DNA of 63,817 nucleotides, filler included, from Reticulomyxa filosa (taxonomy: Eukaryota > Protista > Foraminifera): assembly GCA_000512085.1 (NCBI GenBank). It is 27 parts of 27 records of this genome, joined end to end, with 100 filler letters (N's around TTAATTAATTAA, not from the genome) between each part and the next. Parts side by side here need not be neighbours in the genome. Positions count along the whole stretch, not along the records: positions 13,298 to 16,228 come from ASPP01029378.1; 26 more parts are not named here. One strand, given 5' to 3'. Positions 13,621-14,468 of this stretch are shown here, piece after piece. The notes beneath the pieces were generated by a model that saw only the letters and a program-made list of their open reading frames with translations, was not told the DNA's origin and searched no databases. Positions within the stretch are counted from its first letter, which is position 1. The number at the start of each line of letters is the position of its first letter. The translations under genes and the position numbers were made by a program.

Positions 13621-13661
13621 ACGGTTTCGCCCTACCTTTGGGCTCATCAGTGCTCTCAGGT
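13621..13661 (-). ncRNA. Hammerhead ribozyme catalytic strand (HH-B)
   Basis: Minus strand: ACCU GAGAGCA CUGAUGA GCCC-AAAGGUA-GGGC GAAA CCGU. There is no local complement for stem I; the matching substrate is at 14456-14468. Confidence 0.85.
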
Positions 13662-13914
13662 CGAGATGTGCTTTCCACTAGCCATCCCCTATGTGCTTCC
13701 TAGCGACAAAGTCTTCACTAGTCTCCATATACCTCTGGAGGTCCTAGTACGACTATGCTGGGCATAGGGTGCAATTAGTGGCATCTCTAATGGGAAACGG
13801 TAACCTTCGGCTAATACACCATGGCTAGCGTATGACCGTCAAGTGGGCCGCACTTGATTGACCTATCACCACGTCTCAGGTGGCGTATAGGAGCGGATGC
13901 TATACTAGCAGTGT

Positions 13915-13960
13915 AAGAGCTTTCGCCTGTTGACAGCCTATCAGTGCTTCTTCGAACACG
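13915..13960 (-). ncRNA. Variant or degenerate hammerhead-like core (HH-C)
   Basis: AGAAGCA CUGAUAG GCU-GUCAACA-GGC GAAA GCUC. It has the same AGCA-CUGAU...GGC-GAAA frame as HH-A and HH-B, but G8/A9 are swapped. Confidence 0.45.
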
Positions 13961-14455
13961 AAGCTTATAGATAGGCGTGTAGAGCAGTTCGGACAGCTAC
14001 ACTTAACCCATTCCCCTTAGATTTTCTATGCGGCGCCCCCAACATGTCTATGGCAGCTCTACGATTACTCTCGAAGGTGATAGAGCTTAAGGTTAGTCCG
14101 GGCACCACATGGCATGAATGCTCCTACGACAAGCGCGTAGCATGTGTCGGCGTACTGGGCCAATTCCCGTTGGTCTTTGCAAATGGGCCGGAACTATGTT
14201 ACCATCACGACCCCCAGTCTTTGTACCTAAGTCCGAAGACATCAGTACGCTGATACTGGTTCGAGCCACCCACCCCGGGCAGCTAGGGGTAACGTCCTCC
14301 CCGGTAGGCAAGATATAATACCGGCCAACTCAAGCACCGTATATATCCGTCCTCCGTTTCCAATGAAGAGGGCCAACTAACCCTAAGGTATCACGTTCTT
14401 AGCAATTAGGAACGCGTACCATAGAGGATGTTGAAGAGTCGCTAATCCCTTAGGG

Positions 14456-14468
14456 AAGAGCAGACCGT
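14456..14468 (-). ncRNA. Distal substrate strand for HH-B; GUC cleavage predicted between 14463 and 14462
   Basis: Minus strand ACGG-UC-UGCUCUU pairs with CCGU (stem III) and GAGAGCA (stem I, 6 Watson-Crick pairs plus 1 GU) of HH-B. Confidence 0.72.

Follow-up and report, generated by a model that had tools for sequence, protein, structure and literature searches.

A possible discontinuous hammerhead ribozyme, with its strands about 800 nt apart, beside a contiguous type I hammerhead in a non-coding DNA block

Closest Described Systems

To our knowledge, Clec2 3'UTRs are the sole known source of discontinuous hammerheads, which escape detection by standard motif searches. PMC2950038, PMC4041007, and PMC6155905 trace these ribozymes to the work of Martick et al. 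in 2008 on mammalian Clec2 3'UTRs and report that cleavage was shown and that the motifs are conserved among orthologues. The insert in helix I measures ~250 to 790 nt in rodents (PMC4041007) and 150 to 1500 nt across mammals (PMC6155905). The Clec2 authors argued that searches limited by distance miss split ribozymes (PMC4041007, PMC6155905, PMC2950038), as did the earlier note on the DNA described here.

Contiguous hammerheads occur in several mobile or clustered arrangements. Non-LTR retrozymes carry type I hammerheads, and retrozyme-like repeats with such hammerheads give circular RNAs of 150 to >1000 nt, which are ligated by cellular ligases (PMC7229834). Plant LTR retrozymes contain a type III hammerhead in each LTR of ~350 bp and form circular RNAs of 600 to 1000 nt (PMC4918200, PMC6155905). 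In bacteria and phages, clusters consist of compact hammerheads of type II or III that flank small ORFs (PMC3088659).

The locus described here lies in a 2.9-kb piece, positions 13298-16228 of the window, the window being the whole stretch of 63,817 nucleotides (filler included) that was presented; this piece was searched, and all positions below are window coordinates. The locus comprises a hammerhead enzyme strand termed HH-B, a distal substrate strand, and a complete type I hammerhead termed HH-A. The split topology itself is already known from Clec2, and the locus represents a possible further discontinuous hammerhead of the Clec2 type. It shares with Clec2 the type III topology, with the substrate upstream and the enzyme downstream in cis and a large insert in loop I (here 798 nt), as well as a canonical catalytic core and a GUC triplet. 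In contrast to Clec2, the locus is unrelated and non-mammalian, a complete type I paralogue is located 188 nt downstream, and HH-B keeps a local stem III-like hairpin. Compared with the 3'UTR setting of Clec2, the stop of a minus-strand gene (15249) lies ~780 nt upstream of the substrate strand, with three AAUAAA motifs in between. A split hammerhead at this locus is plausible. If true, it would be a second independent example and would make split ribozymes a recurrent solution instead of a mammalian oddity, with the contiguous paralogue HH-A alongside showing the arm design to be expected.

Setting of the Locus

The piece contains a non-coding block and a gene in AT-rich DNA:

13298-14900, no strand assigned: non-coding block of ~50% G+C that carries the hammerheads, truncated by the left edge of the piece; AT-rich DNA begins at ~14900
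16070-15806 and 15637-15249, minus strand: two-exon gene with a 168-nt GT..AG intron, in the AT-rich part

The base composition of the block (13298 to ~14900) is even, and its longest ORF does not exceed 82 aa. A random or synthetic origin of the block is ruled out by its significant dinucleotide bias, which is of the type seen in natural sequences. A scan of the piece for tRNA genes found none, a scan for bacterial promoters and terminators was uninformative, and blastn of the block against phage and plasmid sequences gave 0 matches. A TATATATATA run at 14893-14905 sits exactly on the border between the AT-rich DNA and the block of 50% G+C. Read on the minus strand, this run is a candidate TATA box, from which transcription could proceed across the substrate strand and both hammerheads, HH-B and HH-A.

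The two exons of the neighboring gene were searched separately, and both match the same uncharacterized Cys-rich proteins encoded on AT-rich contigs of marine metagenomes; there, no intron interrupts the gene. HMMER yields only three homologues of the protein (41 to 45% identity), all on marine metagenome contigs, and no hammerheads are found near these three genes. A word-based search gives no homologue, and the protein shows neither viral relatives nor a Pfam family. Conserved motifs of the Cys-rich protein include PCNxxxC, GGCxxxC, FGVRRRS, HKFxNCGCDC, and YECWxCF, among others. The spliceosomal-type intron of the gene indicates a eukaryotic host context. The locus resembles the bacterial and phage clusters in having several different hammerheads close together in one orientation but differs from them in being eukaryotic, in lying beside an intron-bearing gene, and in having a block free of ORFs.

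Enzyme Strand and Distal Substrate Strand

The elements of HH-B and of its putative partner are as follows:

13621-13657, minus strand: HH-B enzyme strand with intact core, 33/38 identical to HH-A (blastn E=4e-7)
13657-13651, minus strand: stem I strand GAGAGCA of HH-B
13650-13644, minus strand: core CUGAUGA
13643-13629, minus strand: stem II GCCC-AAAGGUA-GGGC, with 4 G-C pairs and a 7-nt loop
13628-13625, minus strand: GAAA
13625-13621, minus strand: stem III strand ACCGU
14456-14468, minus strand: distal substrate strand ACGGU-C/UGCUCUU (slash, predicted cleavage), the best partner of HH-B in the whole piece
13658-14455, minus strand: insert of 798 nt, non-coding, ~50% G+C, with a possible dead hammerhead relic at 13950-13921

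HH-B contains the conserved core of the hammerhead clan in Rfam (CL00010), C3-U4-G5-A6-N7-G8-A9 and G12-A13-A14, and shows the closed helix II beside the core that belongs to the definition of this clan. The letters and coordinates given for this strand in the earlier note are all correct, and so is the observation that HH-B has no local partner for stem I. In an exhaustive scan, each U-H position of the minus strand of the piece was taken as a potential cleavage site and assessed for contiguous pairing with the arms of each core. Apart from the distal strand, no partner of HH-B with at least 4 pairs in stem I and at least 3 in stem III is found, except for a weak cross-match to the site of HH-A (7 bp). 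An Rfam search at a cutoff as loose as E<=10 likewise leaves HH-B without a local hammerhead, which says little because these models cannot score a motif that is split.

The distal strand completes stems III and I around a GUC triplet, as had been proposed, although with 12 contiguous arm pairs (5 + 7) instead of the 11 previously counted. Stem III is formed by ACGGU/ACCGU, 5 bp including A15.1-U16.1, which supplies the helix III and the NUH triplet of a hammerhead. Stem I is formed by UGCUCUU/GAGAGCA, 7 bp including one G.U, and only with the distal strand does HH-B possess a helix I directly 3' of the cleavage site. U16.1 corresponds to position 14464 and C17 to 14463, placing the predicted scissile bond at 14463/14462. 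The distal strand sits 814 nt upstream of HH-B on the same strand, so that the order is substrate and then enzyme, and it is followed by CCC, as is the substrate strand of HH-A. Genuine metagenome hammerheads subjected to the same scan have arm totals of 9 to 14 pairs, always with a local partner; 12 pairs are thus normal for a working ribozyme.

The intact and apparently constrained enzyme strand might also be taken to act in trans on an RNA encoded elsewhere, with 14468-14456 irrelevant or one of several targets. We know of no established natural trans-cleaving hammerhead, and the sole good target within the 2.9-kb piece searched is the distal site; action in trans is judged very improbable. 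Hammerheads do work in trans in vitro (PMC6155905), which speaks in its favor.

Comparison with HH-A, Constraint, and Chance

A contiguous hammerhead downstream of HH-B and a possible relic upstream of it provide material for comparison:

13402-13476, minus strand: HH-A, complete type I hammerhead with its core at 13462-13437, 188 nt downstream of HH-B
13921-13950, minus strand: HH-C, possible decayed third hammerhead found with a loose pattern, G8 lost, oriented like HH-B and 294 nt upstream of it

In stem I of HH-A, the 7 bp of GGCAGCA/UGCUGCC lead into an internal loop (CCU/CC) and then into UACG/CGUA. GCCC/GGGC forms stem II, stem III closes as a hairpin with 5 bp and then more, and the triplet is GUA, with cleavage predicted at 13415/13414. 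In the scan of the minus strand, HH-A pairs best with its own strand nearby, 46 nt downstream (7+5 bp), and its minimum-free-energy structure is the hammerhead fold. HH-A scores below threshold in both RF00008 (24.2 bits, E 0.046, threshold 48.5) and RF03152, or RAGATH-1 (24.4 bits, E 0.47, threshold 56.3), the latter alignment showing the type I topology. The additional 5' hairpin and the UAUAA element of RAGATH-1 are matched by the 5' flank of HH-A (13473-13499, minus strand), the alignment of 24.4 bits extending over the whole model.

HH-A and HH-B show identical arm lengths of 5+7. Their 5 differences in 38 nt are located in loop II (3) and in the stem I arm (2), while the core and stem II are unchanged; the probability of such a placement by chance, calculated by hand, is C(19,5)/C(38,5) = 0.023 (~0.02 to 0.03). 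Neither self-comparison nor self-blast reveals alignable sequence outside the 38-nt core, including the 188-nt interval between the two ribozymes. A shared core with 33/38 identities between unalignable flanks indicates that both catalytic cores look constrained, and the constraint to which the core of HH-B thus appears to be subject would imply the need for a substrate. The substrate strands themselves read AAGGUA/UGCUGCC-CCC for HH-A and ACGGUC/UGCUCUU-CCC for the distal site. The distal strand departs from that of HH-A where the arms of HH-B depart, and it retains the CCC opposite the CCU internal loop, a loop that both enzyme strands conserve; both the CCC match and the pattern of differences are post hoc observations.

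The most serious alternative is that HH-B is an orphan, an inactive paralogue of HH-A whose own stem I has decayed, and that the 13-nt match 814 nt upstream is coincidental. In 5000 dinucleotide-preserving shuffles, a partner of at least 12 bp arises in 0.74% (block of 50% G+C) to 1.4% (whole piece) of the trials, so that the match is rare in the shuffle check suggested by the earlier note. The distal match is therefore better than chance without being overwhelming for a single locus (P ~0.01), and this value is only modest because orphan hammerhead copies are common in eukaryotic repeats. A chance of ~1% per core is also non-negligible over a large scan. Neutral decay, on the other hand, would erode the core like the flanks, yet 33/38 positions are kept, with differences only at tolerant positions, and the distal arms equal the architecture of HH-A exactly, with 5+7 bp. 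With these points on either side, together with those from the local hairpin and from folding given below, an orphan HH-B is regarded as a real but doubtful possibility. If the match is due to chance, the locus would be a small hammerhead cluster with one complete and one orphan member, which is ordinary for eukaryotic repeats.

The putative relic HH-C also bears on the orphan explanation, in that a third dead copy at 13950-13921 would suggest a decaying cluster. HH-C reads AGCA-CUGAU_AG-GCUGUCAACAGGC-GAAAG, with GCUG..CAGGC before GAAAG. It may be a dead third hammerhead copy; its local alignment score of 23 to 24 lies within the background (null median of 21). An inverted hammerhead relic on the plus strand at ~14456-14520 was considered as a source of the complementarity and rejected, as its local alignment scores of 19 to 21 compare with a null median of 21.

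Local Hairpin of HH-B and Permuted Units

One feature absent from the earlier note is a hairpin directly after the GAAA of HH-B, which ends in GUC (13625->13596):

13596-13625, minus strand: stem III-like hairpin of HH-B, ACCG-UA-UG-C-GCU-ACUGA-AGC-C-CA-GU-CGGU, then C (13596)

The hairpin is imperfect, with 9 bp from 13625 to 13597, and occupies the place of helix III and the cleavage site of a type I hammerhead. The bases that follow it (CGCAACC) form no stem I. This hairpin suggests either a type I ancestry of HH-B or its derivation, by permutation, from a unit that was circular or multimeric. For an orphan HH-B, the survival of a hairpin ending in U-C and of a GUC at 13625-13596, where a type I hammerhead would have them, counts in favor; against this, the hairpin by itself is not significant (P 0.25).

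The sequence CGGUC precedes the distal stem I strand and also ends the local hairpin of HH-B. The shared CGGUC fits a permuted copy, in which a circle or multimer reading ...CGGUC/UGCUCUU... (slash, junction) would restore a type I hammerhead in a unit of ~867 nt (14462->13596), and in a single linear genomic copy of such a unit the stem I partner would come to lie at the other end of the unit. The complementarity could then be merely historical, if the element in question was a circular or multimeric one with a type I hammerhead, akin to retrozymes or satellites, and the locus represents a single dead monomer of it in linear, permuted form. Such a monomer would have a terminal redundancy of 5 to 6 nt ((A/U)CGGUC), its hammerhead would be contiguous only in circular or tandem RNA, and the genomic copy would not work. 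The type I topology of the adjoining HH-A agrees with this, as does the fact that eukaryotic type I hammerheads are normally found in retrozyme-like repeats (PMC7229834). The redundancy amounts to merely 5 nt, however, and the sequences 3' of the two CGGUC copies are unrelated (6/16 identical). There is no tandem repeat or second unit, as self-comparison returns the 38-nt core only, the block has 50% G+C, and the unit exceeds the 170 to 400 nt typical of metazoan retrozymes. A dead monomer of this kind is considered decidedly unlikely.

A simple retrozyme or satellite origin is disfavored by the lack of a tandem repeat and of an LTR and by the unique interval of 188 nt between HH-B and HH-A. 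Type I hammerheads in tandem units of ~150 to 450 bp, which characterize non-LTR retrozymes and hammerhead satellites, are not seen in the block, where only the 38-nt core is repeated. The two LTRs of ~350 bp with a type III hammerhead each that characterize plant LTR retrozymes are likewise not seen: the block has no direct repeat >38 nt, and the piece stops short of the element's left end.

Folding of the Long-Range Hammerhead

The hammerhead stems are absent from the minimum-free-energy fold of the region. Forcing these stems in an RNA of 869 nt costs 3.9 kcal/mol (minimum free energy) or 4.6 kcal/mol (ensemble). With shuffled inserts, the cost is 5.2 +/- 3.2 kcal/mol, and 16/32 shuffles lie at or under the native value; the native insert is thus no better than shuffled sequence, which gives no sign that it has been shaped for closing the helix. 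The type III topology and the loop I insert of ~800 nt described in the earlier note are borne out, with an exact length of 798 nt, whereas these values do not support its further claim that the insert is structured, in the sense of a domain drawing the two ends toward each other.

Modeled as two pieces, the strands gain more stability from an alternative duplex of the distal region with HH-B (-23.4 kcal/mol) than from the hammerhead fold (-20.4 kcal/mol). This competing duplex joins 14475-14456 with 13657-13640 (minus strand) in ~17 bp, with 3 G.U pairs and 2 bulges. On the HH-B side, it takes in the stem I strand, CUGAUGA, and the 5' half of stem II. Such pairing may represent an alternative, inactive conformer or may simply be due to chance. 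The preference of both the minimum-free-energy and the two-piece folds for other pairings, together with an insert that bears no mark of having been shaped for helix closure, adds to the case for an orphan HH-B. Taken as a whole, the folding models appear neither to favor nor to forbid the long-range hammerhead.

The block is only mildly more structured than shuffled sequence, with a folding z of ~-2.6 on both strands. A rod-like or viroid-like fold of the block was therefore rejected, the long-range helices of the minimum-free-energy structure (e.g., 14529-14515/13546-13560) also being at chance level.

Proposed Excision of a Retrozyme-Like RNA

The explanation favored here, tentatively and as somewhat less than probable, is that the pair is real and is part of a retrozyme-like RNA unit of ~0.9 to 1.05 kb. 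The distal site would be the genuine substrate strand of HH-B, for which its rank as the best partner in the piece, the 12 contiguous pairs, the shuffle frequencies of 0.7 to 1.4%, and the lack of a local stem I all argue. The cost of only ~4 to 5 kcal/mol for the long-range fold in the 869-nt RNA and the precedent of the Clec2 discontinuous hammerheads also count for a genuine pair. The points counted against it are the minimum-free-energy fold devoid of hammerhead stems, the more stable competing duplex, and the insert that performs no better than shuffled ones, as well as the Rfam results, with no match for HH-B and only sub-threshold matches for HH-A.

According to the proposed mechanism, the transcript of the minus strand of the block would fold into a discontinuous hammerhead of type III topology with the 798-nt insert in helix I. 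This split hammerhead would cleave itself between 14463 and 14462, in a manner similar to that of Clec2, and HH-A would cut at 13415/13414. The two cuts together would release an RNA of 1048 nt (14462->13415) with a 5'-OH and a 2',3'-cyclic phosphate, the kind of ends that retrozymes circularize. The layout would most likely have arisen when an RNA unit bounded by hammerheads was copied into the genome in linear, permuted form. Since permutation of a unit by its nature parts the two strands of the ribozyme, the split layout, if true, would be tied to the life cycle of circular RNAs and retrozymes.

The fuller proposal, in which a non-mammalian discontinuous hammerhead acts jointly with HH-A of type I to excise a possibly circularized non-coding RNA of ~1,048 nt (14462->13415), is rated as rather unlikely. 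If it holds, two ribozymes that differ in topology would delimit a retrozyme-like unit, located in a G+C-rich block of an AT-rich eukaryotic genome. Through the long-range helix, 5' processing of this RNA would then require the entire unit to be transcribed and folded.

The proposed unit shares features with both groups of retrozymes. As in the non-LTR retrozymes and hammerhead satellites of animals and protists, HH-A is a type I motif whose helix III is closed and whose helix I has an internal loop, and there are two hammerheads in the same orientation, whose two cuts would give an RNA with circularizable ends. In contrast to those elements, there is no tandem repeat, and the interval and flanks are unrelated beyond the 38-nt core. 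The G+C content of ~50% compares with <45 to 50% in non-LTR retrozymes, and the predicted RNA of 1048 nt (or the unit of 867 nt) compares with their usual 170 to 400 nt. With the plant LTR retrozymes, the locus has in common a non-coding, fairly G+C-rich unit of ~1 kb between two hammerhead cleavage sites; it differs from them in that no LTRs or direct repeats are detected and in that the two ribozymes differ in topology, one of them being split.

Hammerhead Cores in Other Genomes

Searches with exact hammerhead core patterns gave 0 matches in viral contigs. In GTDB genomes and metagenomes, the core patterns retrieved generic compact type III hammerheads of bacteria, one type I hammerhead (L007), and one CRISPR spacer, none of which is related to the block. 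The same GCCC-N7-GGGC core sequence is present in bacterial contigs. The CRISPR spacer belongs to JBCCQY010000057.1, a Myxococcota MAG (L002, ~755-792), whose CRISPR array comprises at least 30 repeats that recur every ~73 nt. One spacer of this array contains a complete hammerhead core (GGCACUGAUGAGCCC-N7-GGGCGAAACC), so the host has gained immunity against a hammerhead-bearing mobile element or phage.
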